Of a stretch of 64,000 nt of DNA, positions 8,547-57,746 are shown piece by piece. The position numbers and the translations under genes were made by a program. A model generated the notes under the pieces. The model did no database searches and was not told the origin of the DNA. It saw nothing but the letters and a program-made list of their open reading frames with translations. Numbering within the stretch: position 1 is the stretch's first letter; each line of letters starts with the position of its first letter. The stretch lies in sequence record MK773491.1, one strand, 5' to 3'.

Positions 8547-8577
8547 TTGGGACAAACCGAATAACATGTGATATAAT
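8547..8577 (+). promoter_or_regulatory. TTGGGACAAA / TGTGATATAAT promoter (copy 1)
   Basis: Conserved box plus extended -10, upstream of MoxR. One of five near-identical copies. Confidence 0.85.
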
Positions 8578-8713
8578 AAACGCATATTAAGAGACACAGT
8601 ACGGAACACTAACAAGGCACTGAAGTTAATGGTAACACAGTGCCTTCTCTTTTGCTTATGGATTAGCGATAAACTGAGTATTACATTTTATAACCCAAAT
8701 GAGGAATATACAT

Positions 8714-10036
8714 ATGAGCAACGATCTACTAAACCTAACTCTATCCCCAAAGAAAACTAAAATTGCAATGGCACTAGCTGACCGTGTAAAAGACAGTCTA
8801 ATGATTTGGGGTGCACCCGGTATTGGTAAATCTGCTGTGGCACTACAGTACGCTAATGAAAAATATCCACTACGCAAAGACAATCTAGAAAAACTAGAAT
8901 TCATGCGTAAACAAATTGAAGAAGAAACAGATGCAGCACAAAAAGCTCAACTTGAACGTGAATATAAAGCATTTGACGCTAAACTAATCGATCAAGACAC
9001 TAACTTCATCGATTTCCGTCTATCTCAAATCGACCCAACTGACCTACGTGGGATTCCTGTACCAGAAAAAATCTTCCTAGATATGGATGGTAAATCTCTA
9101 ATTGAGTCTGAACTAAAAGAAGTACAGGATTATATCGCAGAAACCGCAGTTATTTGGGCTGCACCAAAAGTACTAAAACTACCGTCTGATTGGAAAGGTG
9201 TTATTCTATTTGATGAAATTAACTCAGCCATGCCAATCGTACAGGCTGCTTCTTATCAGCTAATCCTAGACCGTTGTGTTGGCGAAATGAAGCTACCTAA
9301 AGACTGCCTAATCCTAGCAGCAGGTAACCGTGAAACTGATGGTGGTGTAACTTTCACACTAGCAACTCCACTTCGTGACCGTATGACCCACGTTGAAATG
9401 GAACCAAACCATCAAGATTGGATTGATGATTATGCAATCGGTAAGCGTCTAAACCCAGCTACTGTAGCATTCATCAACAACACTGGTACTAAGTTCTTCA
9501 ACACGCTAAACCCTAATGACCCAAGTCATTCTGGTGGTACTTCCCCACGCTCATGGGAACGTGTTGCACAATACGAAGATCTAAATGATGGTTCTCTAGA
9601 TAAAGAAGTATATCGTGCAATGATTGCAGGACGTATTGGTGAAGCTGCTGCAATCTCTTACATCGAATACGTAGAAAACGTATCTAAACTACCTGATACT
9701 ATGAAGATCCTAAATGGTGAAATCAAAGAACTAGATGGTAGCCTAGATATTTCTGCAAACTACTTTATCTCTCTAAATCTAGTGTATAAGATTATTGACC
9801 TATATGCACAAAAACAAGAGAAGAAACTAGAAGTTGATGAATGGAGCCGCCTAGCAAACAACTTCATCATTTTCCTAGAGAAGAACTTCTCCGAATATTC
9901 TGCTGAACTAGCTGTACTAGCAATTCGTACACTAACCCAAGCACGTGTTCAACTATCTTACAAAGAAGTCCCAGCATTCCAAGACTTCGTTAAACGTTAT
10001 CAGGATCTAGTGCGTCGTGCACGTACCCTAAACTAA
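8714..10036 (+). CDS. MoxR-family AAA+ ATPase
   Basis: Walker A GAPGIGKS, DFRLSQIDPTDLRGIP, Walker B LFDEIN, AAGNRE, SPRSWE. Start placed at 8714 because of the GAGGA RBS. Confidence 0.9.
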   Translation: MSNDLLNLTLSPKKTKIAMALADRVKDSLMIWGAPGIGKSAVALQYANEKYPLRKDNLEKLEFMRKQIEEETDAAQKAQLEREYKAFDAKLIDQDTNFIDFRLSQIDPTDLRGIPVPEKIFLDMDGKSLIESELKEVQDYIAETAVIWAAPKVLKLPSDWKGVILFDEINSAMPIVQAASYQLILDRCVGEMKLPKDCLILAAGNRETDGGVTFTLATPLRDRMTHVEMEPNHQDWIDDYAIGKRLNPATVAFINNTGTKFFNTLNPNDPSHSGGTSPRSWERVAQYEDLNDGSLDKEVYRAMIAGRIGEAAAISYIEYVENVSKLPDTMKILNGEIKELDGSLDISANYFISLNLVYKIIDLYAQKQEKKLEVDEWSRLANNFIIFLEKNFSEYSAELAVLAIRTLTQARVQLSYKEVPAFQDFVKRYQDLVRRARTLN

Positions 10037-10043
10037 GTATTAT

Positions 10044-10067
10044 GAGGACGGGTTACCGTCCTCTTTT
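10044..10067 (+). terminator. Terminator between MoxR and VWA genes
   Basis: GAGGACGG-GTTA-CCGTCCTC-TTTT. Confidence 0.7.
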
Positions 10068-10089
10068 AATCTAACAAGAGGATTATATA

Positions 10090-11511
10090 ATGGTAGAAAG
10101 AAATAGTGATGTATCGCCTGAAGTACTAAAAGAGTGTATCAACCGTATGATTCTTGCACGTACATCTTTAATGCTAGGCCATCCATTCTTTGGTGTTCTT
10201 GCATCACGCCTACGTCCAGTACCTAATAATACTTGGTGTCGTACAATGGCTGTTGATGGTAAACATCTTTTTTATAATGTAGAATTCGTTATGGGTCTCC
10301 AAGACCAATCCAAGCGTGAAGAATATGCTGCAAAACTACGTGCTGCAATTCCTGATATTACAGATGAACAAGTTGAAAGTTCATTAAATGGCCTAAGTGA
10401 CCAGAACTTAATCGCAGTAATTTGTCACGAAATTTTGCACTGTGCATATGACCATTTCCTACGCCGTGGTAATCGTGATCCTAAAGCATGGAACGTAGCA
10501 GCAGACTATGCAATCAACCAAATTATTGTTCGTGATAAGATTGGACAAATTCAAGATTCATGGCTATTTGATAAGAAGTTCGATGGAATGACAGCAGAAG
10601 AAATCTATGCTATTCTACTAGAAGAAGCCCAAAAAAATAAAGGTGATGGTGAGGGCGATGGTGACGGCGACGGCGACGATGGTCAAGGTCAAGGTCAGGG
10701 CGGTAGTGGCCCCGGTAAAGGTGAATTTCGTGGCACGTTCGGTGGTGGCACCGTAGACCAACATGATATTCCAGATGAGGGCAAAGCTACTGATGCTGAA
10801 GGTAATCCAATTGACGGAGATAAACGCCGTGAGTATATGGAAGACTTCAAAACTGCTATGATGAATGCTGCACGTGCAGGTAATGCACCAGCGGAAATTC
10901 AACGTATGATTAAAGACTTCCAAGAACCAAAAATTGATTGGAGATCTAAGTTACATCGCACACTCCGTTCTTGGATGAAGAGTGATGCATCTTTCACTAA
11001 TCCTAATCGTCGCTCGTGGAGTACTGGTTTTGGTACTACCGGAACGTTCTATGGTAACCCTATTTTCCCCGGACTAAAACCGGACGAGGACATTGATATT
11101 GCAATTGCACTAGATGCTTCCGGCTCTATTTCTGAAGCAATGCTAAAGGACTTTATCGGTGAAGTACTTGGGATTACTAAGCAATTCAAACAATACAAAA
11201 TTCGTATCATGACATTTGATACACAAGTATACACCGTTCGTGATTACAAAACTGGTGAAGAGAAGAAAATTCTCGAATACCCAATTCACGGTGGCGGTGG
11301 TACTGACTTCCTAGCGGTATGGGAGCACATGAAGGAAGATAATTATAAGCCTAAACAGCTAATTATGTTCACTGATGGTGAACCTTGGAATTCATGGGGT
11401 GATCCAGATTATTGTAAAACATTATTTGTGATTCACTCTAACCCACGCAAAGAAGCACCATTTGGTGAAACTGTTCACTATGAATGGGAAGCGAAAAAAG
11501 CTCGTGCATAA
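10090..11511 (+). CDS. Metallopeptidase-like (HExxH) plus VWA domain protein (DUF2201 type), partner of MoxR
   Basis: TMAVDG, HEILH, WNVAADYAIN, Gly/Asp linker, MIDAS DASGS, GGGGTDF, FTDG. Confidence 0.9.
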   Translation: MVERNSDVSPEVLKECINRMILARTSLMLGHPFFGVLASRLRPVPNNTWCRTMAVDGKHLFYNVEFVMGLQDQSKREEYAAKLRAAIPDITDEQVESSLNGLSDQNLIAVICHEILHCAYDHFLRRGNRDPKAWNVAADYAINQIIVRDKIGQIQDSWLFDKKFDGMTAEEIYAILLEEAQKNKGDGEGDGDGDGDDGQGQGQGGSGPGKGEFRGTFGGGTVDQHDIPDEGKATDAEGNPIDGDKRREYMEDFKTAMMNAARAGNAPAEIQRMIKDFQEPKIDWRSKLHRTLRSWMKSDASFTNPNRRSWSTGFGTTGTFYGNPIFPGLKPDEDIDIAIALDASGSISEAMLKDFIGEVLGITKQFKQYKIRIMTFDTQVYTVRDYKTGEEKKILEYPIHGGGGTDFLAVWEHMKEDNYKPKQLIMFTDGEPWNSWGDPDYCKTLFVIHSNPRKEAPFGETVHYEWEAKKARA

Positions 11512-11521
11512 CAAGCTAAAT

Positions 11522-11550
11522 AAAAGGCACAAATGGATGTGCCTTTTTTT
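11522..11550 (+). terminator. Rho-independent terminator after VWA gene
   Basis: AAAAGGCAC-N8-GTGCCTTTT followed by a T tract. Confidence 0.8.
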
Positions 11551-11558
11551 TGTTTTTC

Positions 11559-11589
11559 TTGGGACAAACTGAGAAAAATGTGATATAAT
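11559..11589 (+). promoter_or_regulatory. TTGGGACAAA / TGTGATATAAT promoter (copy 2)
   Basis: Heads the operon that ends in thyA. Confidence 0.85.
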
Positions 11590-11629
11590 AAGATGTAAGA
11601 CAAATATAATACATGGAGTGTATAAAATT

Positions 11630-11884
11630 ATGAGTACTGAAAACCAAAACGCAATTTCTATCGATATCGTTGATATTATCAATGCAGCGAAAATTATGGA
11701 ACAAGCAGTTAAAAACAACGCATTCAGTGTTGAAGAACTAGTGGAAGTTTCCCCTGTGGTTGCTCGCTTCATCACCGTTGCAAACCAACTAATTGAACAA
11801 CACAATGCAGCAGTTGAAGCAGCAGAAGCGGCTGAAGCTGGTGACACAGAAGGTGAAGTACCATCTGAAAGTAAAGGGGAGTAA
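11630..11884 (+). CDS. Hypothetical protein
   Basis: GGAG RBS favours the ATG at 11630. CTA-biased codons. Confidence 0.75.
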   Translation: MSTENQNAISIDIVDIINAAKIMEQAVKNNAFSVEELVEVSPVVARFITVANQLIEQHNAAVEAAEAAEAGDTEGEVPSESKGE

Positions 11885-11889
11885 TCAAT

Positions 11890-12534
11890 ATGGCTATTAC
11901 TCGACATTGTGGTGTAGTACGTAGTACTGGTTCTCGTGTTTTTGTTGTTTGGCGTCAGCTACCAGATGAGCCTAAAAGCTGTTTGGTAATTTATCAAGAC
12001 TCACTTCCAGAACAATATGCTAATTTCGTTATCGATCTCGTCATGGGGCGTGGACAATCATCTCTAGACCTATGGGACGTAATGGATAAAGTTGGTGTTC
12101 TAGATGGTCGTAAAATGTTAGATGTACTACACCGACTAGGTTATCTACGTCGCATTGATACTAGCAACGTTGATATGCATATTGGCAATGGTGCTAAAAT
12201 TGCCCTAGATCTACTAAACGAACAGCTAGAAGCACAAACTCAACATACTGATGGTAAAGTAAAAGAATTCAATCCTTGGGACGATAAGCAAACAGAATTC
12301 CAAGAAGTAGGTGGGATTGTTTCAAAATTACTTTCCGAAGCAGCACAGTATGAACAACTAGCAAAAGAAACTTATGAACGTGCTTATAGTTTGGAACCTT
12401 CACTTCGTCCACAAGCACAAGTACAGGAATCAATTGAAACAAGTGATCTAGTACTAACCATTCCTGAAGGTACATCCCAAACTAAAGCAATTGAGCTTCT
12501 AAAGAAAGCATTAAAAGAACGTAGTGAAAAATAA
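11890..12534 (+). CDS. Hypothetical protein
   Basis: 214 aa, GGGGAG RBS. Confidence 0.8.
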   Translation: MAITRHCGVVRSTGSRVFVVWRQLPDEPKSCLVIYQDSLPEQYANFVIDLVMGRGQSSLDLWDVMDKVGVLDGRKMLDVLHRLGYLRRIDTSNVDMHIGNGAKIALDLLNEQLEAQTQHTDGKVKEFNPWDDKQTEFQEVGGIVSKLLSEAAQYEQLAKETYERAYSLEPSLRPQAQVQESIETSDLVLTIPEGTSQTKAIELLKKALKERSEK

Positions 12535-12844
12535 GATATCAAGAGACGAAATTGTTAACATGATATTGGCTGAAAGGCAAAATCAGGTAGAGTCACCAAC
12601 GACTCTATCTGATTCAATGAAAACCAAAAATGATTGGACTGCACTAGCTGCTTACTATCTTTTTGAATCTGCTTCTCGTCCAGATAAACATGTAACTTTC
12701 AAAGAATTTCGGGAATCTCTTATTAAGGCATCTGCTGTTCTACTAGCTGCACTAGAAACTAGCTTCTCACTGGAAGATGAGAAATTACAAGATTTACTTA
12801 ATAAATTGGATTCTAATGATGACAATAACGGAACTAGCAAATAG
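12524..12844 (+). CDS. Hypothetical protein
   Basis: 106 aa, GTG start overlapping the upstream gene. Confidence 0.7.
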   Translation: MKNKISRDEIVNMILAERQNQVESPTTLSDSMKTKNDWTALAAYYLFESASRPDKHVTFKEFRESLIKASAVLLAALETSFSLEDEKLQDLLNKLDSNDDNNGTSK

Positions 12845-13406
12845 TATTGCTGGATTCCAAAACGTATGTTATAGTGGCGGGGCAGCAGGTGCTGACCGCC
12901 TTTTTGGTTTGTGGGCTGCATTAAATGATCATGAACAAATTCATTTTTCATTTGCAAAACATAAGTATCATGTTGACTGTAATACGGTTTTGGATATACC
13001 ACAATATATATTATCTGATATATCAATACAAGAAAGATTGCATACTGCAAACAAGAAACTAAAACGTAAAGTTCCACCTACTGGAAATTATGTTTATAAC
13101 TTACTTGCTCGCAACTACTTTCAAATAATCAAGTCTGAACGAGTTTACTGTTTAGCAAAAATTACTTCACCTGATGAAATAGATGGTGGAACTGCATGGG
13201 CTGTGCAAATGTTCATTGACTCATGTGAAAACCCTGAAATATATGTCTATAATCTATTAGACAACAAACCCTATGTTTACGATTGTAGTACTAAAACATT
13301 TAAAGAAGTACTAGAAGTCCCGACACCACATGGTAGATGGACAGGTATTGGTTCTAGAAGTGCGACTAAACTAGATATGGATAGTTTTACTCAGTACTTC
13401 AAGTGA
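12816..13406 (+). CDS. SLOG-superfamily (YspA/DprA-like Rossmann) protein
   Basis: SGGAAGAD, LLARN, GGTAWAVQM and WTGIGSR motifs. Start uncertain (12777, 12816 or 12819). Confidence 0.65.
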   Translation: MMTITELANSIAGFQNVCYSGGAAGADRLFGLWAALNDHEQIHFSFAKHKYHVDCNTVLDIPQYILSDISIQERLHTANKKLKRKVPPTGNYVYNLLARNYFQIIKSERVYCLAKITSPDEIDGGTAWAVQMFIDSCENPEIYVYNLLDNKPYVYDCSTKTFKEVLEVPTPHGRWTGIGSRSATKLDMDSFTQYFK

Positions 13407-13714
13407 GGTATAATATGAGTGATGAATACAATGACGGTTATAATGACGGTTATGACGCCGCCAGAAACGAATGCTATAAAGATGCGTTCGAAGAAGGAAA
13501 AGATACTGGTCATTCTGAAGGTTACGATGAAGGTCTTGAGGACGGAAAAGAAGAAGTACGTAATGAATTAACCGCCCAAATTGATGATCTTCTATATAAT
13601 TTTAGAGATAAATTACAAGAATACCGTTTTACCATTAAAACGTTGATGGAAGAAAATAGAAAGCTAAGGAAAGAGAATGCAACAATTACACGATCTATAC
13701 AAAAAAGTACTTGA
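13403..13714 (+). CDS. Hypothetical protein with GYxxG repeats and a coiled coil
   Basis: YNDGYNDGYD...EEG...EGYDEG repeats, C-terminal heptads. Start may be 13415. Confidence 0.65.
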   Translation: MRYNMSDEYNDGYNDGYDAARNECYKDAFEEGKDTGHSEGYDEGLEDGKEEVRNELTAQIDDLLYNFRDKLQEYRFTIKTLMEENRKLRKENATITRSIQKST

Positions 13715-14609
13715 AACTGGTAGCTATAGTGAAGATCGAACTGGAACTGGCACAATTAAACTAATTGGTCAACAGATGCGATTCAATCTACAAGACGGTT
13801 TTCCTGCGACGACCACAAAACGTCTAGCATGGAAAGCTATGTCATCGGAACTACTTTGGTTCTTAGAAGGTTCCCAAGATGAACGTCGGCTATGTGAAAT
13901 TCTACATGGAACACGCGATCCTGAAAAACGCACAATTTGGACAGATAACTTTGAAAACCAAGGTCGTGCATTAGGTTACATAGATGGTAATCTAGGGCCA
14001 GTCTATGGTAAACAATGGCGTGAATGGGAAGATGTTATTATTCTACCCGGAATTTACAACGAAGTTACTAGACATACTGATATGGGATATTCTTTAGTAG
14101 AACGTACTATTAGTGGTATGTATGTAATGAAACGTGTAATTGATCAAATTGAAGTACTAATTGATGGATTAAAAAATGATCCATATGGTCGTCGCCACAT
14201 TCTATCCGCATGGAATGTTGGTGAACTTGATAAAATGGCTCTACCCCCATGCCATAGTTTCTCTCAATTCTTTGTGGTTGATGGAAAACTATCTTGTACT
14301 TTATACCAAAGATCATCAGATCTATTCCTAGGAGTGCCATTTAATATCGCAAGCTATTCTCTATTAACTCACATGCTAGCACAAGTTTGTGATCTAGAAG
14401 TAGGTGAATTTGTTTGGATGGGTGGTGATTGTCACATCTATCAAAATCATGTAGAACAAGTTAAAGAGCAACTTTCTCGTACACCTAAAGAACTACCGAC
14501 GCTATGGATGGATAAATCAATCACTGATATTGATTCGTTTACTATGAGTTCATTCAAATTGGAAAATTACAACCCTGATGCTATTATCAAAGCACCAATG
14601 GCTGTATAA
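13677..14609 (+). CDS. thyA: Thymidylate synthase
   Basis: DRTGTGT, ELLWFL, LGPVYGKQWR, RRHILSAWN, MALPPCH, YQRSSDLFLGVPFNIASY, DCHIYQNH. No intron. Confidence 0.98.
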   Translation: MQQLHDLYKKVLETGSYSEDRTGTGTIKLIGQQMRFNLQDGFPATTTKRLAWKAMSSELLWFLEGSQDERRLCEILHGTRDPEKRTIWTDNFENQGRALGYIDGNLGPVYGKQWREWEDVIILPGIYNEVTRHTDMGYSLVERTISGMYVMKRVIDQIEVLIDGLKNDPYGRRHILSAWNVGELDKMALPPCHSFSQFFVVDGKLSCTLYQRSSDLFLGVPFNIASYSLLTHMLAQVCDLEVGEFVWMGGDCHIYQNHVEQVKEQLSRTPKELPTLWMDKSITDIDSFTMSSFKLENYNPDAIIKAPMAV

Positions 14610-14613
14610 AAAG

Positions 14614-14642
14614 AAAAAAAGGAGCCAAACGGCTCCTTTTTT
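14614..14642. terminator. Bidirectional terminator between thyA and a fibre gene
   Basis: A-tract GGAGCC-AAAC-GGCTCC T-tract between convergent genes. Confidence 0.85.
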
Positions 14643-14643
14643 A

Positions 14644-16596: not shown

Positions 16597-16627
16597 TAAA
16601 AATTCCTCGGAATATGCTCATATTACT

Positions 16628-16633
16628 TATTTA
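16628..16633 (-). promoter_or_regulatory. Late promoter (TAAATA)
   Basis: TAAATA on the minus strand between the terminator and the GAGGA RBS of the 650-aa gene. Confidence 0.6.
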
Positions 16634-16643
16634 CCCAATTTAT

Positions 16644-16676
16644 AAAAAAATAAAAGCCGACAATTTATGTCGGCTT
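16644..16676 (-). terminator. Rho-independent terminator
   Basis: AAGCCGACA-N5-TGTCGGCTT stem followed by a T tract on the minus strand. Confidence 0.8.
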
Positions 16677-16683
16677 AATTAAG

Positions 16684-16800
16684 TTAACATGCACGTTTTG
16701 TAGTCGTACCAACTAATAAAGTAACACCAAATGGAAAACTATTTAGTTCATTAGATGTAATATCCCCATGAACCGTTACATCTGTCATAAAAGTATACAT
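16684..16800 (-). CDS. Unannotated 38-aa mini-ORF (MYTFMTDVTVHGDITSNELNSFPFGVTLLVGTTTKRAC)
   Basis: AAGGA RBS 7 nt upstream. Fills the gap between two terminators. Its N-terminus resembles that of the 1560-aa fibre. Confidence 0.55.
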   Translation of the reverse strand: MYTFMTDVTVHGDITSNELNSFPFGVTLLVGTTTKRAC

Positions 16801-16812
16801 ATAGTTTTCCTT

Positions 16813-16839
16813 AAAAAAAAGTCGGCTATTACGCCGACT
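16813..16839 (-). terminator. Rho-independent terminator after the fibre chaperone gene
   Basis: AGTCGGC-N6-GCCGACT stem followed by a T tract on the minus strand. Confidence 0.8.
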
Positions 16840-16847
16840 GTTATAAA

Positions 16848-17480: not shown

Positions 17481-17506
17481 TGATTTATTCCTCTTCTTGT
17501 GTTATA

Positions 17507-26667: not shown

Positions 26668-27127
26668 ATATAGGTAAGCAATTTAAGAACGGCTTGCCAT
26701 TTTTAATTGAATCCCATAATGAATTGAAATCATGAACTATAGTTGGATTGTATAAAGTACTTTTGGCTCCCGGATGTAATGGTTTAGGCCAATTGCCGAT
26801 TTTAACCCATGCGTATCCAGCACTTTCATCATTTAGTTCAGGAATAAACTCATCAGGTACTACAATAACAAATGAATAGTACTTGAACTTTCCATTCTTA
26901 GTACAGAAAACATCAAAAGGAATGATATCTTCAATATCAGGAACCGATGTTCCAAGTTCTTCTTCAATTTCTCTATGTAGTGCTTCTAGGGGGCTTTCAT
27001 GATATTCAATCTTTCCACCAACGAAGCCCCAATTGTTAGAGTACGTCACAGTGTCAGAACGAAGATTAAGCATCATCCTACCCGTACTTTTAGCTAAAAA
27101 TATAGCACCGACAGCTTCGTTTGTCAT
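26666..27127 (-). CDS. NUDIX hydrolase
   Basis: Nudix box GGKIEYHESPLEALHREIEEELG. Confidence 0.92.
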   Translation of the reverse strand: MTNEAVGAIFLAKSTGRMMLNLRSDTVTYSNNWGFVGGKIEYHESPLEALHREIEEELGTSVPDIEDIIPFDVFCTKNGKFKYYSFVIVVPDEFIPELNDESAGYAWVKIGNWPKPLHPGAKSTLYNPTIVHDFNSLWDSIKNGKPFLNCLPI

Positions 27128-27136
27128 AAGTTCTCC

Positions 27137-28474
27137 TTATTCTTTAAAACCAATTCTCCAATAACCAGCACGGTACTTGTTCATAATAACACGGTGCCAA
27201 CCAAACTCGCGATTAAAGCGGTAATAGTTTTCATCGTCCATATTATAAACATATCCTTCAATACTGGATGGTTCTATTAGTGTTGCACCATCATTTGTAA
27301 TGATAGCTGCGTAGTTTGGTGGTATTACACTATTCTTATAGTGGATGTTCCTTTCAGAAACATTGATATATATTTCTTCAGGATGTGCATTTACTAGTTG
27401 ATTGTCTTCAATTATAAATGTTCGTATACCAAACTTTGAAGTATAGATGGATGAATCAACTTGAACTAATAATTTATTAGAACTTTCATCATGACCAACA
27501 CTTAGTACTTCACTTTTTATTGGAGTTGGGTCTTCTAAAGATGTTAAGAATCTAATTTGTTTCTGTTTACCCTTGTGAGACTTATCCAAATAGTCAAAAT
27601 ATACTTCCCATGAATAGATTCTACCATTCGCTGATATAGTATTTAATCCTTGTCCAACGAGCGTTAATTCGTACACTTCAGTACTCTTGTCACCACTCTC
27701 AATTTTATCAACGAGTATTCCCATATTCTTCGGTGTGAACACATCAACCACAATATCATTGTAATCACTTAAGATAAAATCTTGTTCAGTGTTTGCAATT
27801 TGCATATTTGTAACAATTTGCTCAATCAATTTAGGTTTTGAGACCTTCGCAGGTAGACTCATCCATATTTGACATTTGAAAGTCATTGTGGCAATATCTA
27901 AATCAGTGTCAGTACCTTGCGGAACAGCACGAGAACTGAATTGTGTGTCGATTAACTCTACATCTGTGAGAGAACACCAATCAAGTGGATTCTCTGAGGT
28001 CTGTAAAGTTACGGCTGGAGCAAAAAGACATGCTAATTGCTCTAGAATTTCCATTTTAGTAGTAAGAAGTGTTGTCCAGATGTTAACACTAAAGGTCAAA
28101 TCCCAAGGTACAGGGTTAAAACGCTCCACTAAATGCTGTTCAGCCAACTTATTAGTGTATTCATTCTGTGCAGGTGATACATTTGTACCCAAAACTATCT
28201 TTTGTGACCAGTGTGAGCGTACATCCTTACGTGACATAGTGAAAGAATCAACACTAATAGTCATCATAGGTGAACTTTTAGCGACGTTTTCACTATTACC
28301 ATTGATAATGTACTGTGCCATACGAGAAATGTCTGCGTAACGGCATGGTACTTTACGATATTTTGGATTTCCATCTTCATCTGAGCCAAAACGCACTTGA
28401 AAATCACCAAAAAGTCTGATAAGATGCATTAAAACTCGGTGAAATTGACCATCGTAGTAATATTCTACTTTCAT
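27137..28474 (-). CDS. gp15: Tail sheath stabiliser / tail completion protein
   Basis: YYYD.QF.R....F...F.V...KVP..Y, VPWDLTFSVNIWT, EQL...F.P motifs of T4 gp15. Has a C-terminal extension. Confidence 0.8.
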   Translation of the reverse strand: MKVEYYYDGQFHRVLMHLIRLFGDFQVRFGSDEDGNPKYRKVPCRYADISRMAQYIINGNSENVAKSSPMMTISVDSFTMSRKDVRSHWSQKIVLGTNVSPAQNEYTNKLAEQHLVERFNPVPWDLTFSVNIWTTLLTTKMEILEQLACLFAPAVTLQTSENPLDWCSLTDVELIDTQFSSRAVPQGTDTDLDIATMTFKCQIWMSLPAKVSKPKLIEQIVTNMQIANTEQDFILSDYNDIVVDVFTPKNMGILVDKIESGDKSTEVYELTLVGQGLNTISANGRIYSWEVYFDYLDKSHKGKQKQIRFLTSLEDPTPIKSEVLSVGHDESSNKLLVQVDSSIYTSKFGIRTFIIEDNQLVNAHPEEIYINVSERNIHYKNSVIPPNYAAIITNDGATLIEPSSIEGYVYNMDDENYYRFNREFGWHRVIMNKYRAGYWRIGFKE

Positions 28475-29967
28475 TATTTGTTATCCTTATGTACTCTGTA
28501 TACAATGTTAGGTTTAACCGCATCTTGTAATGGAACACGGTCTGGTGAGTTGAGGAATCCGGTCATATACTGGTCTGCACCAGTCCAAGGTAAGCGACCA
28601 CCGTATTTAAACTGTCTCCACGATTTAGTTTCATCAGAAAACTTCCATAATGTAACAGGTGTGTAGTCAGTACGGTAGAAGTATTCTCCATCTTGTGGAT
28701 CACTTGGGAAATTAGTACCTTCACCGACTGTTCCACGTGCTGGTGGAATTTCTTCACGACTATCTTCAGGATTATAAATGTTTTCAATGACTTCTTTCGA
28801 AGTAAATGATTTTTGGTGCTCTTGTGGTGCAACAATCCATGTTTTATTATCATCTAATACTTGATAAAGTACAGGTATTGTGTAAAATACATAGAAATCC
28901 TCGTTTTCTTCGGGTACAGTGTCTTCTTTTGTGTAAGGAAGATCACAAACTAGCCATCGTTTTTCAGATTTTAAGTATTGATATAATGTATAACCACACA
29001 CGGACGAATCATCCTCTTTCATAAAAAAATCGCCATCTTTTGGACGCTTAGGAAATTCCGCACCATGTTTTGTTGGTACTTCTTCCCATGAAGTGTTGAC
29101 TTTTTCAAAGAGAACTGGTAAAGTTTCCTTCCAAAAGAACATATTTTTCGATGGTTTCTTTGGAAATGAAGTTCCGCTGAAGATTTCACGTGCTTCACTA
29201 TACAAATCAACTCGGTCATTGTATAAATGTTCGTTTGTGTAATGAATATATGGCACTTCATCATCAGCTTTCATAATAATTCTATTCATTATGTCAATTT
29301 CGTTATTGTAATCGCCTTGTTGACTACCATCACCAGTACTATTTCCGTTTCCATTGTTTGGGTCATCAGGATTGTCTGGGTAATCATTATTATTAAGTAT
29401 ATCTGCGTATTCTGGACTGTCAGTAAGGGGCTTCACACGTATTTTAAAGATGTGATGTTGCCAAGTGACTGAGTACCCTTCTGATGTTCTAAAGGCGTCC
29501 TGAACGGTGTAGAAGCGATTTAAACCACTATCTTTACCCATTACATCGAAGTCGCGTAGGTTAGGTAGTTCTATTACATCACCGGGCATGATTTTTCTTC
29601 CCACACGCTGCATCATTGTGTTATAATGCATCGTAATGTCCATAGTGTTAAAGTTAAAGAACAATCCGGGAATTTTTAAGTCTGGTGTTGCTTCTTGAAT
29701 TTGATATACTACTGGAATGGTGATGGCTTCTAGGTTGTAAGCACGATCTGGTGATTCACCAAAAATTAGATCTCCGATACTTGACACATCAATAGTGTTT
29801 CCGCTATAATCAGGTAATGAGGGGTCGCTAGATGTACTAGCATTTTTCGGGCCAATGTAACAGTACAACCACATATCGGTTCCACCCATGTTGTATTGGT
29901 CTGCAATGGCACCATCGATGAATTTATAATCATCGGTTCTGCCTTTTTTCCACATGCTATATGCCAT
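28474..29967 (-). CDS. gp14: Neck / head-closure protein with C-terminal repeats
   Basis: DYKFID..I..Q...GG.D..LY, FGE..DR.Y, GRKIMPGDVIELP. Located next to gp15. Confidence 0.7.
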   Translation of the reverse strand: MAYSMWKKGRTDDYKFIDGAIADQYNMGGTDMWLYCYIGPKNASTSSDPSLPDYSGNTIDVSSIGDLIFGESPDRAYNLEAITIPVVYQIQEATPDLKIPGLFFNFNTMDITMHYNTMMQRVGRKIMPGDVIELPNLRDFDVMGKDSGLNRFYTVQDAFRTSEGYSVTWQHHIFKIRVKPLTDSPEYADILNNNDYPDNPDDPNNGNGNSTGDGSQQGDYNNEIDIMNRIIMKADDEVPYIHYTNEHLYNDRVDLYSEAREIFSGTSFPKKPSKNMFFWKETLPVLFEKVNTSWEEVPTKHGAEFPKRPKDGDFFMKEDDSSVCGYTLYQYLKSEKRWLVCDLPYTKEDTVPEENEDFYVFYTIPVLYQVLDDNKTWIVAPQEHQKSFTSKEVIENIYNPEDSREEIPPARGTVGEGTNFPSDPQDGEYFYRTDYTPVTLWKFSDETKSWRQFKYGGRLPWTGADQYMTGFLNSPDRVPLQDAVKPNIVYRVHKDNK

Positions 29968-29996
29968 TTGTTGTCTCCAAAATGTTTATATATTGG

Positions 29997-30002
29997 TATT
30001 TA
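29997..30002 (-). promoter_or_regulatory. Late promoter (TAAATA) for the gp14-gp15-NUDIX operon
   Basis: ~30 nt upstream of the gp14 ATG, back-to-back with the TTGGGACAAA promoter. Confidence 0.6.
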
Positions 30003-30007
30003 TTTTT

Positions 30008-30038
30008 TTGGGACAAATGAGATTTTATGTGATATAAT
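30008..30038 (+). promoter_or_regulatory. TTGGGACAAA / TGTGATATAAT promoter (copy 3)
   Basis: Upstream of clpA. Confidence 0.85.
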
Positions 30039-30077
30039 TGATTATGTCGTGCAAAATTCAACGAAGGAGAAGCACTT

Positions 30078-32348: not shown

Positions 32349-32380
32349 AAAAAGAGGGCGAAAGCCCTCTTTTTGTTTTT
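32347..32380. terminator. Bidirectional terminator (GAAA loop)
   Basis: AAAAAGAGGGC-GAAA-GCCCTCTTTTT between convergent genes. Confidence 0.85.
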
Positions 32381-32382
32381 TA

Positions 32383-42446: not shown

Positions 42447-42454
42447 TATTTATA
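42447..42454 (-). promoter_or_regulatory. Late promoter (full TATAAATA)
   Basis: Exact T4 late consensus on the minus strand, upstream of the 3342-aa gene. Confidence 0.7.
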
Positions 42455-46414: not shown

Positions 46415-46423
46415 TTATTATCC

Positions 46424-46912: not shown

Positions 46913-46942
46913 ACTTATTCTCCTTTATTTAGTCGCCTAAAT

Positions 46943-51950: not shown

Positions 51951-51962
51951 AAAAACCTCCTA

Positions 51963-52277
51963 TTATTTGACTCTACGTGGACTACTTAAGTAGGTTTGAA
52001 TTCGTTGCAATGAAGGAATTCGAATTACTGTTCCTGCTTTAAAATCGTATATTGGGTCTACTAAAATATTTGGATTTAGTAGAGCAAAAACGTAATATAA
52101 ACGCTCATTACCATATAATTCATAAGATAAACGCCAAGGTTGTTCATCATACTTGGTTGGAATTGTATAATTAATATCGGAATCAGCAGGTACAATTCCG
52201 ATTGGTAAGTTGTATGCTAAGTACCATGTCTGACGTACTTTTGCATACGGAGAGTACTGACTATATGTAGAAGCCAT
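51963..52277 (-). CDS. gp53: Baseplate wedge protein (gp53/LysM-like)
   Basis: YTIPTKYDEQPWRLSYELYGNERLYYVFALLN...IYDFKAGTVIRIP. Confidence 0.85.
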   Translation of the reverse strand: MASTYSQYSPYAKVRQTWYLAYNLPIGIVPADSDINYTIPTKYDEQPWRLSYELYGNERLYYVFALLNPNILVDPIYDFKAGTVIRIPSLQRIQTYLSSPRRVK

Positions 52278-53008
52278 TAAATGAATCCTCCTTTTCTCAT
52301 TAATGCACCACGTTTAAACGCATTCAAATTGAATTCCTTCGTCATATAATCAGACGTTGGTTGTTCTTCAAGTTGAATTGTTACTGGTAGTTTTTGTGGA
52401 ATCCAAACTTCATTCTCTTTGTTCATTAAACCACGTGCTCTTAGGTTATTAAAGAATGCACGAGAATCTTTATCGGTTATATTGAACTTAGCTGTAATAG
52501 AATCCACTGGTACTTGAATGTATGGTACATCATTTTGGAAACTAAAGTTATAGGATTTGATAATAACTGGAATGTCATTATACATATATCGTCCGTAACC
52601 ACTAAACAATAGAATTGGTGGTGGAGCACCAACAACCGCAACATTTGGGTTGTTCGCTACTGCTGCTTGACGACCAAAGTCCATTAGAGAAGATGCACGG
52701 ATGAAGTTCATACATGCTAAGGTATACATCGCTTCAGTTGCAGTGCTGGAGTAGAAATCTCCTTGTACTGAAATAATGGCGTTAGATGTATTTTTGTAGT
52801 TGTTGTAGTTACTGTTACTATGCATTGTTTGTTGTGTTTCATAGCTTACAGAACGTTGTTCGCTAATAGTAGGTGTATAGTTCCAGACCATCCCATTAGT
52901 ACTGCGAAGTATAGAGAGTAGTGTTGGCTTACTTAAGTTGCCACTATCACCGTATACGTAATTTTGAGCCGCTGGGCGTGGTCTCAATCTGATTCGACGG
53001 TCTATCAT
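52277..53008 (-). CDS. Baseplate tail-tube initiator-like protein
   Basis: GMVWNYTPTI...Y...HSN..Y..Y...ISVQGDF, GAPPPILLFSGYG.YMYNDIPVIIKSYNFS tube-fold motifs. Confidence 0.7.
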   Translation of the reverse strand: MIDRRIRLRPRPAAQNYVYGDSGNLSKPTLLSILRSTNGMVWNYTPTISEQRSVSYETQQTMHSNSNYNNYKNTSNAIISVQGDFYSSTATEAMYTLACMNFIRASSLMDFGRQAAVANNPNVAVVGAPPPILLFSGYGRYMYNDIPVIIKSYNFSFQNDVPYIQVPVDSITAKFNITDKDSRAFFNNLRARGLMNKENEVWIPQKLPVTIQLEEQPTSDYMTKEFNLNAFKRGALMRKGGFI

Positions 53009-53037
53009 AAAAATTCTCCATAAAAAGACTTATAATA

Positions 53038-53045
53038 TATTTATA
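53038..53045 (-). promoter_or_regulatory. Late promoter (TATAAATA) for the baseplate operon
   Basis: Exact T4 late consensus, back-to-back with promoter copy 4. Confidence 0.7.
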
Positions 53046-53048
53046 AAT

Positions 53049-53078
53049 TTGGGACAAACTGGAAAAATGTGATATAAT
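53049..53078 (+). promoter_or_regulatory. TTGGGACAAA / TGTGATATAAT promoter (copy 4)
   Basis: Upstream of gp55-47-46. The spacer is 1 nt shorter than in the other copies. Confidence 0.85.
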
Positions 53079-53129
53079 AGTGAGGTGGGACACGGATCGT
53101 CTCATGAAATTTACATGGAGTGTTACAAT

Positions 53130-53975
53130 ATGATAACTAAACCGAAGCGTAAGAAGTACTTGAATAACGCTGACTTACTAAGAGAGATACATCTCAGTAA
53201 AATGTCGTACTGCTGGCTTATTGATGAGTGCTACAGTATGTATGATTATATCGTTTTTGATGTGGAAGAGATTGATGAGGAACTACTAGAAAAAGCTAGT
53301 GCCGCACGAATCAAACGTCTAAACAATGAAACAGTGGAAGAGATTAGGGCAAAAGAAGGGCTATCAGCGAAGAAAGCCAAAGAAGCTGCTGATGCACGTG
53401 GTCTTATCCTTACATCCGTTCCCATTGATGAAGTTGTTATACGGGTCATCACCGATGAGCATATCCCGGAAGAAAAAGGCGTCAAAATTCGTGTCAACTT
53501 CGAACCCTTCAAACATTACATCGTAGACGAAGATTCCACGTTATATGAAGTTGCTCGTTCTCACTGGATCGGTGATACCGATAGCGGTGAATTCTGTATG
53601 ACACACGGACGAATGACTAATGAACTTGGAAAGATGTTCATCAAACTTGCAGAAGAAATATCCCATAAAACTAACTACCGAAATTATACGTACTTAGATG
53701 AAATGATGGGTGATGCAAGAATCCAACTAGTTAAAAATGCTTTACTCTTTAAAGAAAGTATTTTATACAAAAAAGATAAACCTGCCGTTCAACTAAATCC
53801 TTTTTCTTACTATACATCATTTGTTAATAACGCATTCCGTTCAGTACTAAACACTGAAAAGAATGTACGCAATATTCGTGATGACTTACTCGAATTAAAC
53901 GGGTTTACACCAAGTCATACACGACAAATTGAAATTGAAATGAAAATGATGGAAGGTAAAAATGGCTCTATTTGA
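53130..53975 (+). CDS. gp55: Late-transcription sigma factor
   Basis: YLNNADLL.EI, LGKMFIKLAE..S...NYRNYTYLDEM, NPFSYYT....NAF...L..EK. The GGAG RBS supports a start at 53130. Confidence 0.88.
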   Translation: MITKPKRKKYLNNADLLREIHLSKMSYCWLIDECYSMYDYIVFDVEEIDEELLEKASAARIKRLNNETVEEIRAKEGLSAKKAKEAADARGLILTSVPIDEVVIRVITDEHIPEEKGVKIRVNFEPFKHYIVDEDSTLYEVARSHWIGDTDSGEFCMTHGRMTNELGKMFIKLAEEISHKTNYRNYTYLDEMMGDARIQLVKNALLFKESILYKKDKPAVQLNPFSYYTSFVNNAFRSVLNTEKNVRNIRDDLLELNGFTPSHTRQIEIEMKMMEGKNGSI

Positions 53976-54993
53976 TAAAGCAGTAACTTTTACTGATATT
54001 CATCTAGGATTGAAGAATAATAGTAAAGAACATAATATAGATTGCGTTAACTTCATAAAATTTATGATCAATGAAGCCAAAGAACGTGATATTAAAGTTT
54101 GCATTTTTATGGGAGACTTTTTCCATAATAGAAGTAATGTCAATATTAGTACACTAAACTACGGTTTAGAAATAATGAACTTACTAAATGACAACTTCGA
54201 ACAAACATACTTTCTAGTAGGCAACCATGATATGTATCACAAGAATAAACGTGATATTACAAGTATTAACATGGCAAAGTCATTTGCAAATATCAATTTT
54301 ATTAACAAAATGACAACAATCGATGATTGTACTTTCATCCCTTTTATGATAGACGATGAGTACTTGCAATTACCGAAACTAACCAGCAAATATGTTTTTG
54401 GTCACCTCGAATTACCCGGTTACCTATTAAACAAAATGGTTGAAATGCCAAATCATGGTAAAGAAACACAAGAATCTTTCAATGGCTGTGAATATGTCTT
54501 TAGTGGTCACTTCCACAAACGACAATCAAAAATCACACCAACTGGTACACGAATTATCTATACTGGTAACTGTTTCCCACATAACTTCTCAGATACATGG
54601 GATGATGCACGTGGTATCATGTTTTTAGAACATAACAAAGAACCACAATTCAAAGCATGGGATAATGCACCAAAGTATAGAACTTTCACTCTTTCGGAAA
54701 TGCTAAATGAACCGTCATACTACATTCAAGATAATGTAATTGCTAAAGTTCAAATAGATATTCCAGTAACAATGAATGAAATTGGCTACATTCGTGAAGT
54801 ATTCAGTAAGCTATACAATATTCGTGAATTCAATATTGTGAATAGTAAGAAAGCTCTACAAGAAAGTTTAGAATATGGTGAAGTGGAAACTTCCACGGAA
54901 TCAGTAGATGAAATTGTACTAAAACAAATTCAAGAGATCGATTCACCTATGTTTGACAAAAATCTACTAATGCAAATTTATACATCACTTTAA
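53962..54993 (+). CDS. gp47: Recombination nuclease subunit (Mre11/SbcD-like)
   Basis: FTDIHLG, FMGDFFHNR, VGNHD, GHLE, SGHFH, YTGN metallophosphoesterase motifs. Confidence 0.95.
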   Translation: MALFDKAVTFTDIHLGLKNNSKEHNIDCVNFIKFMINEAKERDIKVCIFMGDFFHNRSNVNISTLNYGLEIMNLLNDNFEQTYFLVGNHDMYHKNKRDITSINMAKSFANINFINKMTTIDDCTFIPFMIDDEYLQLPKLTSKYVFGHLELPGYLLNKMVEMPNHGKETQESFNGCEYVFSGHFHKRQSKITPTGTRIIYTGNCFPHNFSDTWDDARGIMFLEHNKEPQFKAWDNAPKYRTFTLSEMLNEPSYYIQDNVIAKVQIDIPVTMNEIGYIREVFSKLYNIREFNIVNSKKALQESLEYGEVETSTESVDEIVLKQIQEIDSPMFDKNLLMQIYTSL

Positions 54994-55004
54994 TGGAGTA
55001 AAGA

Positions 55005-57161
55005 ATGTTAACCATCAAAAAAATAACAATGAGAAACTTCTTCTCATTCGGGAATGCCCCACAAGAACTTGAATTTCAAGGTAAAGATATCTCACTTGTA
55101 CTAGGACAGAATAACGATGTTGTAGTTGATGGTGGTGATAGTACTGGTAGACGCAACGGTGTTGGTAAATCAGCACTTATTCAAGGTCTTGTATTTGGTT
55201 TGTATGGTAAAAGCATTGGTAATGATATCAAAATACCTAACCTAGTAAACAAAATTAATACCAAATACTGTGAAGTTACGGTAGAATTTGAAAAGAACGG
55301 TGTTGAGTATAGAATTGAACGTGGGAGAAGTCCCACGTATTTTAATTTTCTTACACTAAAGGATGGAGTTGTCATAGAAGATGATTCCAGAGGTGAAAAG
55401 AAAGATACTCAAGAAGAACTAAATGAAATTCTAGGTATTTCTCAAACTCTTTTCGAACATATTGTAGTATTAAATGCTAACGTAGACCCTTTCCTATCAC
55501 TAAGTGCACAAAAGCAACGTGATATGATTGAAGAACTACTTGGTATTACACAATTGACAGAAAAAGCTGAACTTCTAAAGGATATGCAAAAGGATTCTAA
55601 GAAATTAGCAGAGCAAGAGAAGTTTAAAATCGATACATTACTTGCATCCAACGAAAGAATCCAAAAAAGTATTGAGAATCTTCAAGTACAAGCAAATACA
55701 TTTGAAACTAATAAGCAAAATAAGATTGATAGTCTTAAAACACAGCTTAATGAGTTTGATTTTGCAGATAAATTTGGGTTTGAACCACTCTATGAGAGTG
55801 CTAAAGAAATGGAAGATGCAATTGAACATAATAACAAGCGTTCTGTACTAGAAAATCGTTTGAATAGTCTAATGCAAAAGCGTGAACAATATGATCAACA
55901 ACTATCAACAAACAAAAGCCTAATTCTACAGAAGATTAATGAGCTAAAAGCCATTGATATTGAAGCTGAGTTGAAACAACACGACGAACTAGAAATGTGG
56001 CATCAGTTAGAAGATATTCTAAAGACCAATATGAATACTAAGATGTTCAAAGAGCAGTCTATAAGACAAAGTAAGTCTGAATTGGAACGTCTCAAAAACT
56101 CATTGACGAAAGAAAATGAGAAATTGTCCACAATTGAAGATAGTAAGTGTCCAATGTGTAATAGTACTTTAGAAAATGACCATAATCATTCAGAAATGGT
56201 CTCTAAAATTAATAACACAATTGAAGAACTAACTTCACAGATTTTACAGGCCGAATATAAGATTTCTACAACACTAGAAGAGATTGATGAACTCGAAATA
56301 TTCGAAATGCCACCAAAACCTACCACTAAATATGCGACTCAAGCAGAAGCTAAACTTCACGAGCATAAACTATCTGAATATTTGAAAAAGTATGAAGAAG
56401 ATGAAGTGAATATCTATGATGATGAGCTAGTCAGTACTTATACTGAATTGGAAGGTATGGAGTTAAAAGAGTATGATGTAGTATTCAGTACTCAAGAAGT
56501 ACAACAACTTGAAATGACATACAAATCATTAAAAGAACAATTGGTACGTGAAGAATCTAATGATAACCCATATATTACACAAATAGAGACGTTAAAGACG
56601 GATTCTCTACAAGTGGTGGACTATAATCAATATAATGAGTTAGAAAAACTATCAACTCACCAAGATTTCCTAGTAAAACTACTACTTAATAAAGATTCTT
56701 ATGTCCGTAAACGTATCATTGAGCAAAATATCTCGTATCTTAACAACAGATTGCAATTTTACATTGAGCAATGTGACTCGGAGCACTTTGTGAAGTTCAT
56801 GAATGACCTAAGCGTGGAGATTACACTCAATGAACAGTCCTATGACTACAAACAATTGTCTCGTGGTGAGCGTACACGTGTAAACGTGGCCTTGTCATTG
56901 GCATTTAGGGACACCTATGAGTCATTATATCAAGGAATAAACCTAATTATGATTGATGAGATGATTGATGTGGGTCTAGATCCATCTGGTGTATACCGTA
57001 TGTGGACTATTTTCTCGGATTTAGCAGTAATTCAACGTAAAAACGTGTTTGTTATTTCCCACAAAGAAGAACTACTCAGTAAAACAGACAATATTCTTAA
57101 GATTGTCAAAGAAGATGGTTTTAGTACTATCGAATTAGCGTCACTTGATGACGTTTATTAA
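55005..57161 (+). CDS. gp46: Recombination ATPase subunit (Rad50/SbcC-like)
   Basis: RNFFSFGN, Walker A RNGVGKS, coiled coil with CPMC zinc hook, LSRGE signature, IDEMIDVGLD, VISH. Confidence 0.95.
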   Translation: MLTIKKITMRNFFSFGNAPQELEFQGKDISLVLGQNNDVVVDGGDSTGRRNGVGKSALIQGLVFGLYGKSIGNDIKIPNLVNKINTKYCEVTVEFEKNGVEYRIERGRSPTYFNFLTLKDGVVIEDDSRGEKKDTQEELNEILGISQTLFEHIVVLNANVDPFLSLSAQKQRDMIEELLGITQLTEKAELLKDMQKDSKKLAEQEKFKIDTLLASNERIQKSIENLQVQANTFETNKQNKIDSLKTQLNEFDFADKFGFEPLYESAKEMEDAIEHNNKRSVLENRLNSLMQKREQYDQQLSTNKSLILQKINELKAIDIEAELKQHDELEMWHQLEDILKTNMNTKMFKEQSIRQSKSELERLKNSLTKENEKLSTIEDSKCPMCNSTLENDHNHSEMVSKINNTIEELTSQILQAEYKISTTLEEIDELEIFEMPPKPTTKYATQAEAKLHEHKLSEYLKKYEEDEVNIYDDELVSTYTELEGMELKEYDVVFSTQEVQQLEMTYKSLKEQLVREESNDNPYITQIETLKTDSLQVVDYNQYNELEKLSTHQDFLVKLLLNKDSYVRKRIIEQNISYLNNRLQFYIEQCDSEHFVKFMNDLSVEITLNEQSYDYKQLSRGERTRVNVALSLAFRDTYESLYQGINLIMIDEMIDVGLDPSGVYRMWTIFSDLAVIQRKNVFVISHKEELLSKTDNILKIVKEDGFSTIELASLDDVY

Positions 57162-57165
57162 CACT

Positions 57166-57192
57166 AAAGGGAGCTATTAGCTCCCTTTTTTT
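57166..57192. terminator. Bidirectional terminator; the endonuclease VII stop codon lies in its loop
   Basis: AAAGGGAGCT-ATT-AGCTCCCTTT followed by a T tract. Confidence 0.8.
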
Positions 57193-57671
57193 ATATTAAG
57201 CATATCCAACTTTCCTTCTTTTATTAATTTTCTGGCTTGGTTGGCTCTTTTTTTAACATTACTCTCAGGAATTACCCCAAATGACTCTAAAATATCACAT
57301 TGTTGTTTAGCTGGTAACGCTTTATACTTTTTAACATCAATTGAAAGTGCAGTATGGTGAATTACCATCTCTTCTTCAGGTATATTTCCATTTCTCTCTA
57401 GATAATCTGCTAAATTTCGTAAGATTTCTGGTAGTGATTTATCAGTTAAATGTTTCATGTACCTATTAAAGCTATTTGTCACCTTTCCTTCCCATGCATT
57501 GCACTCATTTTGTAGTACTTCACGACAATGCTGGTGGCCTTGGTGATAGTGATCAAGTACTGGTTTGGTTATCAGTTCTTTTGTTATAGGATCTATTCCC
57601 TTTTGTTTTTTTAGGAGTTCGTTGCGATACTTTGCAGCATCTTTAGAATCCTTTAAGCGTTTTTTTGCCAT
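57177..57671 (-). CDS. gp49: Endonuclease VII-like Holliday junction resolvase
   Basis: Q.G.DPI......VLDH.H...CR.VL...CN..EGK His-Me finger. The first Zn cysteines are replaced. Confidence 0.8.
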   Translation of the reverse strand: MAKKRLKDSKDAAKYRNELLKKQKGIDPITKELITKPVLDHYHQGHQHCREVLQNECNAWEGKVTNSFNRYMKHLTDKSLPEILRNLADYLERNGNIPEEEMVIHHTALSIDVKKYKALPAKQQCDILESFGVIPESNVKKRANQARKLIKEGKLDMLNIKKGS

Positions 57672-57703
57672 ATAAAGTACTTCTCCAAAATTTTAATACT
57701 ATG

Positions 57704-57709
57704 TATTTA
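57704..57709 (-). promoter_or_regulatory. Late promoter (TAAATA) for endonuclease VII
   Basis: ~33 nt upstream of the ATG, back-to-back with promoter copy 5. Confidence 0.6.
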
Positions 57710-57715
57710 CGATTC

Positions 57716-57746
57716 TTGGGACAAACAGCAAAAAGTGTGATATAAT
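57716..57746 (+). promoter_or_regulatory. TTGGGACAAA / TGTGATATAAT promoter (copy 5) with no downstream CDS
   Basis: Same consensus as the other four copies, followed by a structured non-coding region. Confidence 0.85.

Follow-up and report, generated by a model that had tools for sequence, protein, structure and literature searches.

A predicted phage-specific promoter class in the Salmonella jumbo phage 7t3, with an RpoD-like phage sigma factor as its candidate reader

Phage 7t3 (MK773491.1) is a 348,718-base-pair (bp) RaK2/121Q-like jumbo myovirus of Salmonella, whose near-identical relatives are SE_PL, Munch, PHA46 and the Klebsiella phage fENko-Kae01. The window analyzed here, a 64,000-nucleotide (nt) stretch corresponding to record bases 186001-250000, contains five near-identical elements ahead of non-structural genes; these are designated class A, and their predicted function as promoters and the phage protein that may read them are the subject of this report. 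Each consists of an exact TTGGGACAAA box (at 8547, 11559, 30008, 53049 and 57716, on the + strand in all five cases) followed, after gaps of 10, 10, 10, 9 and 10 nt respectively, by TGTGATATAAT, within which TGA and TATAAT make up a perfect extended -10 element (TGnTATAAT). The pattern GGGACA-N15-19-TATAAT is matched 5 times, versus 0.05 expected, and none of 100 dinucleotide shuffles reached 5. The positions, the common strand and the GGGACA-to-TATAAT distances of 17, 17, 17, 16 and 17 nt had been read in the same way in an earlier note on this stretch (the original prediction), and the downstream units it named (MoxR-VWA, the thyA operon, clpA, gp55-47-46 and a noncoding RNA) were borne out by domain matches, annotation and an ORF-free stretch (ORF, open reading frame). 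The sequence points to promoters, and the elements are given as such here, together with their units, in window coordinates.

8547..8577, + strand: putative class-A promoter 1 (box 8547-8556, 10-nt spacer, extended -10 block 8567-8577), predicted start ~8584
8714-10036 and 10090-11511: promoter 1 unit, an AAA ATPase and a DUF2201 metallopeptidase/VWA protein
11526..11551, + strand: terminator of unit 1 (hairpin and T-run, from reading the sequence), directly upstream of promoter 2
11559..11589, + strand: putative class-A promoter 2 (box 11559-11568, -10 block 11579-11589), predicted start ~11596
11630-14609: promoter 2 unit, an operon with thymidylate synthase (thyA, 13677-14609) as its last gene
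30008..30038, + strand: putative class-A promoter 3 (box 30008-30017, -10 block 30028-30038), predicted start ~30045
30078-32348: promoter 3 unit, a ClpA-like gene, followed by a terminator at 32347-32381
53049..53078, + strand: putative class-A promoter 4 (box 53049-53058, 9-nt spacer, -10 block 53068-53078), predicted start ~53085
53130-53975, 53962-54993 and 55005-57161: promoter 4 unit, a gp55-like late sigma, SbcD/gp47 and SbcC/gp46, with a terminator at 57166-57192
57716..57746, + strand: putative class-A promoter 5 (box 57716-57725, -10 block 57736-57746), predicted start ~57753
57753..58240, + strand: promoter 5 unit, an ORF-free structured RNA gene with a hairpin and T-run at 58179-58202 and a conserved 3' block at 58209-58240
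61267..61276, + strand: sixth exact box, within the ORF at 59528-61756 and without a -10 element

About 0.8 copies of the box 10-mer are expected by chance per whole genome, as estimated from base composition, and the sixth box is probably such a chance occurrence. The five elements lie between real genes, as originally proposed, although the GenBank record places ORFs of 30-37 amino acids (aa) over four of them (7t3_0408, 0411, 0430, 0444). More broadly, 30-56-aa "hypothetical proteins" are annotated over promoters or in the structured-RNA gene at 8492-8590, 11480-11572, 29968-30081 and 57643-58581 (several in the last interval), and these small ORFs are probably over-annotation rather than genes.

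Two further observations concern the surroundings of promoters 4 and 5. GGGACAC occurs again 8-10 nt 3' of the -10 element in two class-A promoters, that of gp55 (53086-53092) and the second promoter of the SSB region (record 271699). The partial TGGGACA copy noted earlier at 53086-53092 is present, but it is not conserved, reading TAGGACA in phage EJP2, and is treated as incidental; the EJP2 counterpart is TAGGACAC, and either a 5'-leader element or chance is possible. The genomes of Munch and fENko-Kae01 have, immediately ahead of promoter 5 (window ~57700), a further ORF of 318 aa that is absent from 7t3 (Munch L032:5026-5982); it has repeated Cys/His motifs, resembles a homing endonuclease, and runs with its final codons into the TTGGGACAAA box.

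A genome-wide motif search, which the original prediction had proposed, was carried out on the complete annotated 7t3 record and gave ~34 class-A members, all on the + strand, so that the "five-copy" description proved to be an artefact of the window. Their layout is an A-tract, cTTGGGACAAA, 9-10 nt and TGTGATATAAT; 31 members have a gap of 10 nt between box and -10 block, and the remaining 3 a gap of 9 nt. Information in the box and the -10 block is mostly 1.5-2 bits per position, with a total of nearly 40 bits. TATAAT is present in all 34 members and TG(A/C)TATAAT in 33 of 34, and the conserved block (TGTGA) is longer than a usual extended -10. At the -35 register, with a spacing of 16-17 bp, the hexamer GGGACA matches TTGACA at 4 of 6 positions, lacks its TT, and sits inside an invariant 10-mer. 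Twenty-four members precede protein operons, five precede tRNA or tRNA-like genes and five precede structured-RNA genes, and the units are ordered promoter, genes, terminator. The protein operons (in which orthologue names were borrowed from the better-annotated PBECO4) include the DNA polymerase region, RNase H, the SSB/UvsX region, primase, exonuclease, topoisomerase II, DHFR/RNase HI/Dda, nrdD and NadR/NAMPT, as well as the thyA, ClpA, MoxR/VWA and gp55-47-46 units of the window.

There are no tRNAs in the window itself; elsewhere in the record, tRNA-Ser (record 329274) starts 8 nt past the -10 hexamer of the class-A promoter at 329255. The same 8-nt distance is found for another annotated tRNA-like gene (record 338183-338202). 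The tRNA-Ser primary transcript would begin at the mature 5' end or 1-2 nt ahead of it and would leave hardly any leader for RNase P.

The structured RNA of promoter 5 belongs to a family. The interval 57753-58240 has no ORF, no 3-nt substitution periodicity and no direct or inverted repeats, and skips in contigs over the RNA unit represent paralogous copies or relatives; the region and EJP2 share 78% identity over 957 nt, with a block of ~250 nt that is ~99% identical. Five copies of ~430-520 nt occur in 7t3, each with its own class-A promoter, and the four paralogues lie at record 30759, 103196, 162811 and 325559, or by record piece as follows.

L003:30758-31190: structured-RNA paralogue
L005:3196-3717: structured-RNA paralogue
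L006:12828-13337: structured-RNA paralogue
L008:25563-26037: structured-RNA paralogue

The family is present in 4-5 copies in each of 62 GenBank records of RaK2-like phages, and a pattern scan of IMG/VR recovered 55 copies on ~18 contigs, with 3-6 per jumbo genome. An alignment of 15 sequences has 62 predicted pairs, of which 35 show compensatory changes, with 96.6% of cells paired; slid controls of the same alignment gave 11-15 pairs and 36-45%. Its invariant blocks include CGGCAATGCGGC, TAAGGGAG, GACCGTTG and GAAACAG..CAACCCGC. Rfam gave nothing in the window at the gathering threshold, and only chance-level matches to the RNA unit at E<=5. The noncoding RNAs of phage PA5oct defined by RNA sequencing were considered as homologues and rejected, there being no nhmmer match and no common motifs, and a description of the family was not found in the literature searched. 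In 121Q (L029:11019-11487) and RaK2 (L030:10942-11434), one copy with a class-A-type promoter stands directly downstream of the gene for an RpoD-like sigma; in 7t3 the closest copy is 3 kilobases (kb) downstream of the corresponding gene.

Class A coexists in 7t3 with two other motif classes. A separate set of 38 TTGACA-N16-18-TAnAAT sites (29 with TATAAT), mostly without the TGTGA block, is concentrated in small-ORF regions at 21-36, 68-78 and 300-348 kb; class A is a discrete class set apart from it, and in this respect a phage-specific promoter class heading non-structural genes, as first proposed, stands. The third class is the T4-type late motif TATAAATA, found in the window 37-43 nt ahead of three minus-strand structural operons, and both parts of a T4-type late system, a gp55-like sigma and TATAAATA before structural genes, are present. 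The sites of these two classes in the window are as follows.

29781..29809, + strand: canonical TTGACA-N17-TATAAT match, candidate host-type promoter, inside the minus-strand gene 28474-29967 and 230 nt upstream of promoter 3
53038..53045, - strand: late promoter motif TATAAATA of the divergent baseplate operon (52277-53008 and beyond), ending 3 nt from the box of the gp55 promoter
42447-42454: similar TATAAATA late site
59510-59517: similar TATAAATA late site

The late-sigma gene and a late baseplate operon thus diverge from a single 120-bp intergenic region. Because class A heads replication genes, nrdD, NadR/NAMPT and gp55, while TATAAATA heads structural operons, gene content suggests pre-late (middle-type) timing for class A. 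Several of the canonical TTGACA promoters also have an inverted repeat, GGGAGTA...TACTCCC, flanking the -10 hexamer (L003:33902-33945, 35208-35250 and 35817-35860; L004:25920-25965, record 75920), which resembles an operator and could act in early shut-off.

Two sigma factors are encoded by 7t3. The gp55-like protein of the window matches phrog_12791 (E 5.7e-146) and phrog_234, "late sigma transcription factor" (E 2.6e-17). The other, 7t3_070, is an RpoD-like protein of 322 aa encoded outside the window (record 26691-27659). It has Pfam matches to Sigma70_r2 (E 2.5e-14) and Sigma70_r3 (E 2.4e-9), matches NCBIfam RpoD_Cterm with E 1.3e-30, which is under the curated cut-off of that model, and aligns to PDB SigA chains through region 4.1 (E 2.8e-20). 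In an alignment read by eye, it is changed at positions aligned to Escherichia coli W433/W434, H455 and E458, the last two of which read the extended -10 in E. coli. A structural model of an orthologue comprises sigma2, sigma3 and a four-helix C-terminal domain, with predicted local distance difference test (pLDDT) values of 60-85, and the structures that it matches best in Foldseek, over 237-297 columns, are those of sigmaS and SigA. The nearest promoter-like sites upstream of 7t3_070 are of sigma70 type, 1.5-3.5 kb away, and sigma genes of the CBB clade have a sigma70-type site 0.5-0.8 kb upstream. That the RpoD-like sigma is packaged in the virion, which would make class A immediate-early, was also considered and rejected, as the virion proteome of fENko-Kae01 lists only the 281-aa gp55-like sigma.

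Comparison among related phages bears on what reads the box. The set comprised the replication regions of four phages (PBECO4, CBB, RaK2 and Hallingskeid) and, for EJP2, the stretch from gp55 to DNA polymerase, together with the sigma loci of these five phages and twelve IMG/VR sigma loci. At orthologous intergenic positions in CBB, PBECO4, RaK2, Hallingskeid and EJP2 the same promoter architecture is found, with a -10 of TGTGnTATAAT type in most clades, PBECO4 and RaK2 having a less strict form, and, 18-19 nt upstream of that block, a box that is specific to the clade. The boxes and the last helix of the RpoD-like sigma are listed by clade.

7t3 clade: box TGGGACA, sigma last helix SRTSLHRCY
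EJP2: box TGAGAC(A/G), sigma last helix NRCTIHRRY
Hallingskeid: box TG(G/A)GA(T/C)A, sigma last helix SHSTIHRRY
PBECO4/121Q: box G(A/G)GACAAA, sigma last helix SRSSIHRKY
CBB, GAP32, BF, fHe-Yen9-04 and six metagenomic genomes: box TGAAAC(G/C/A), sigma last helix SKATLSRRY
RaK2: box TTGAAC(A/G), sigma last helix VRGTLHYKF

The TGAAAC clade comprises 10 genomes, Xanthomonas-phage-like ones among them. Position -13 differs as well, being A in 7t3 and G or C in the CBB clade. In the pattern scan of IMG/VR, ~40 of the 55 structured-RNA copies had a readable upstream promoter, and each had the box type of its own genome; in these ~40 copies, from ~18 phage genomes, the promoter stands at a fixed distance. 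Canonical TTGACA promoters, for their part, are unchanged at the sigma-flanking loci of most clades, and none were seen within the stretch compared in two CBB-clade loci. Region 4.2 of host sigma70 is essentially invariant. The box has been rewritten genome-wide in concert while region 4.2 of the host factor is invariant, and therefore its reader is very probably encoded by the phage.

For the identity of that reader, the RpoD-like sigma itself provides some indication. Its orthologues are 29-45% identical, versus 74-78% for DNA polymerase, and in the 12 genomes for which both are known the last-helix motif tracks the box type: SRTSLHR or SRSSIHR occurs with GRGAC boxes, all TGAAAC genomes have SKATLSR, and RaK2 has VRGTLHY. 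This co-variation is suggestive and not proof, and from the sequence comparisons 7t3_070 appears to be the best candidate reader of the class-A box. The best reading of these findings, to which we give a probability of about 0.58, is a cascade of three sigma factors. Host sigma70 holoenzyme would read the canonical TTGACA/TATAAT promoters, including that of the unit with 7t3_070, and 7t3_070 on host core polymerase would then read the class-A promoters, its conserved regions 2 and 3 contacting TGTGATATAAT and its divergent C-terminal helix-turn-helix the box, with the A-tract upstream of the box a probable contact of the alpha subunit. Class A would in turn switch on genes for replication, nucleotide metabolism and proteostasis, tRNAs, the five structured RNAs and the gp55-like sigma, which would read the TATAAATA late promoters as the last tier.

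A number of observations weigh against this cascade. Pfam region 4.2 has no match in 7t3_070 or any orthologue, the sole partial match, to region 4.1, being in the PBECO4 sigma. The AlphaFold model is that of an 84%-identical IMG/VR orthologue and not of 7t3_070 itself, and in it the last helix is preceded by an inserted beta-hairpin, inside the helix-turn-helix that would have to read the box. The co-variation of sigma and box amounts to just three or four independent clade changes, and the last helix also varies where the box stays the same. With regard to start sites and timing, a search of run archives for RNA sequencing of infections found only DNA-like assemblies and wastewater libraries, and contigs from four sequencing runs were without 5' ends and gave no start-site or timing signal. 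The promoters themselves carry a perfect TGnTATAAT, GACA at -35 and an A-tract, so that host sigma70 may suffice, and an unrelated phage DNA-binding activator, which is compatible with the sequence searches, may be the box reader.

An activator was part of the original prediction, which invoked either a MotA-like protein or a modified sigma. Host sigma70 would in this case read the extended -10, which is a perfect sigma70 element, and a phage DNA-binding protein other than MotA, perhaps with an anti-sigma, would bind the box in place of the -35 contact. A box that exceeds a -35 hexamer, is invariant and is clade-specific would suit any phage-encoded DNA binder; most 7t3 genes have no known function, and in CBB an HTH_37 "transcriptional regulator" is encoded two genes upstream of the sigma. 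However, no homologue of T4 MotA or AsiA was detected in the whole 7t3 genome at the sensitivity of sequence-level searches (tblastn and phmmer, best E 0.2-2), and the core of the box lies at 17 bp, the canonical register of sigma region 4 and not that of MotA. An activator would also leave the RpoD-like sigma without a promoter class, whereas there are three sigmas for three motif classes, one for each, and the shift by clade of the -10-proximal position -13 points to sigma itself. An activator is thus considered unlikely; the phage-encoded reader of the original prediction is retained on account of the clade-wise switching of the box, while the MotA-like mechanism is not, given the lack of a detectable homologue, the 17-bp register and the RpoD-like sigma encoded.

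Slightly less probable again is that host sigma70 holoenzyme acts alone, class A being simply the strongest early promoters and the box a -35 variant with an UP-like element. E. coli-type sigma70 holoenzyme uses extended -10 promoters without a good -35, and these require little from that element; GACA at 17-bp spacing and an upstream A-tract are present in addition, and T4 early promoters are known to combine a phage-specific extended consensus with unmodified sigma70. The description of class A as activator-dependent is unsupported; the perfect extended -10 could let host sigma70 use the promoters to some extent. Against host sigma70 as the only reader stand the separate class of perfect TTGACA-TATAAT promoters in the same genome, which show no drift, and the CBB-clade TGAAAC, which fits TTGACA at only ~2 of 6 positions and was switched genome-wide without a change in host sigma70; nearly 40 conserved bits are also far above what sigma70 needs. 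That the elements are not promoters at all but a dispersed element of another kind, for example the site of a replication or packaging protein or the end of a mobile element, is very improbable: their orientation is strictly that of the downstream genes, they are intergenic and follow terminators, their -35/-10 geometry is perfect, and tRNA and RNA genes begin a few nucleotides downstream.

Promoters of this kind were not entirely without precedent. Three classes were predicted in CBB by MEME, namely RpoD-like, "divergent RpoD-like" and ATAAATA late (Buttimer et al. 2017, PMC5259590); the divergent class has a -35 of TGAAACG and 18 sites, which precede genes of DNA synthesis and the gp55-like gene, and is also seen in GAP32 (PMC5259590, citing Abbasifar et al. 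2014). The phages belong to the same group, and the GAP32/CBB class resembles class A in its positions (DNA polymerase, RNase H, SSB, primase, exonuclease and the gp55-like gene), in combining a classic or extended -10 with a non-TTGACA -35 element in the same register, and in coexisting with RpoD-like early and ATAAATA late promoters. It differs in the box, TGAAACG versus TGGGACA(AA) in 7t3, and in the -10 block, T(G/A)TG(G/C)TATAAT versus TGTGATATAAT, and its publication named no reader, no tRNA or structured-RNA members and no clade-wise switching of the box. The 7t3 class is a clade variant of an already predicted promoter kind, and the word "undescribed" in the original prediction goes too far; what is new is the full regulon, the concerted switching of the box, the proposed sigma assignment and the RNA members. 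Minimal and RpoD-like sigmas have been reported in group-2 jumbo phages (Iyer et al., PMC7824862). In the literature searched, no experimental study of class-A promoters or of this particular RpoD-like sigma was found.

The better-known T4 system offers both likenesses and differences. The T4 MotA box, (a/t)(a/t)(a/t)TGCTTtA, lies near -30, 11-13 bp from the -10. Like class A, T4 middle promoters join a sigma70-type -10 to a phage-specific upstream box, drive replication genes and gene 55, and form, as is predicted for class A, the middle tier of a three-tier program ending in gp55/TATAAATA. The 7t3 box TTGGGACAAA, however, stops 14-15 bp short of TATAAT, with its core 17 bp away in the -35 register, and 7t3 encodes a full-length RpoD-like sigma, which T4 does not, but has no detectable MotA/AsiA. 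T4 early promoters likewise share an extended, strongly conserved consensus peculiar to the phage, which contains TGn, TATAAT and A-tracts, but their -35, GTTTACA, matches TTGACA at 5 of 6 positions and is read by host sigma70, whereas 7t3 has a true TTGACA class besides class A. Known phage sigmas acting on host core also redirect polymerase to a phage consensus and are expressed from host-type early promoters, as is predicted for 7t3_070; they are, however, small and divergent with promoters that lack TATAAT, while the 7t3 candidate is RpoD-like and would keep the housekeeping -10 and alter the extended -10 and the -35.

Jumbo phages of the RaK2 type, which have ~550 genes, have been isolated widely and are candidates for therapy, and class A provides a testable map of the whole pre-late regulon for the 7t3/Munch/fENko-Kae01 clade. 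It also corrects the annotation of several 30-56-aa "hypothetical proteins" and reveals a conserved multi-copy structured RNA family in RaK2-like phages. With regard to the role of the RpoD-like sigma of group-2 jumbo phages, a concrete hypothesis can now be put forward. More tentatively, and at slightly less than even odds, RaK2-like phages may contain orthogonal sigma/promoter pairs, in which a fast-evolving RpoD-like sigma with a hairpin-bearing region 4 would co-evolve with a -35 box rewritten in concert at no fewer than 30 promoters per genome, the housekeeping -10 being kept and the regulon including an RNA family of ~450 nt found only in these phages. If this is true, the clade boxes would represent a ready-made specificity swap and a source of orthogonal sigma/promoter pairs for synthetic biology.

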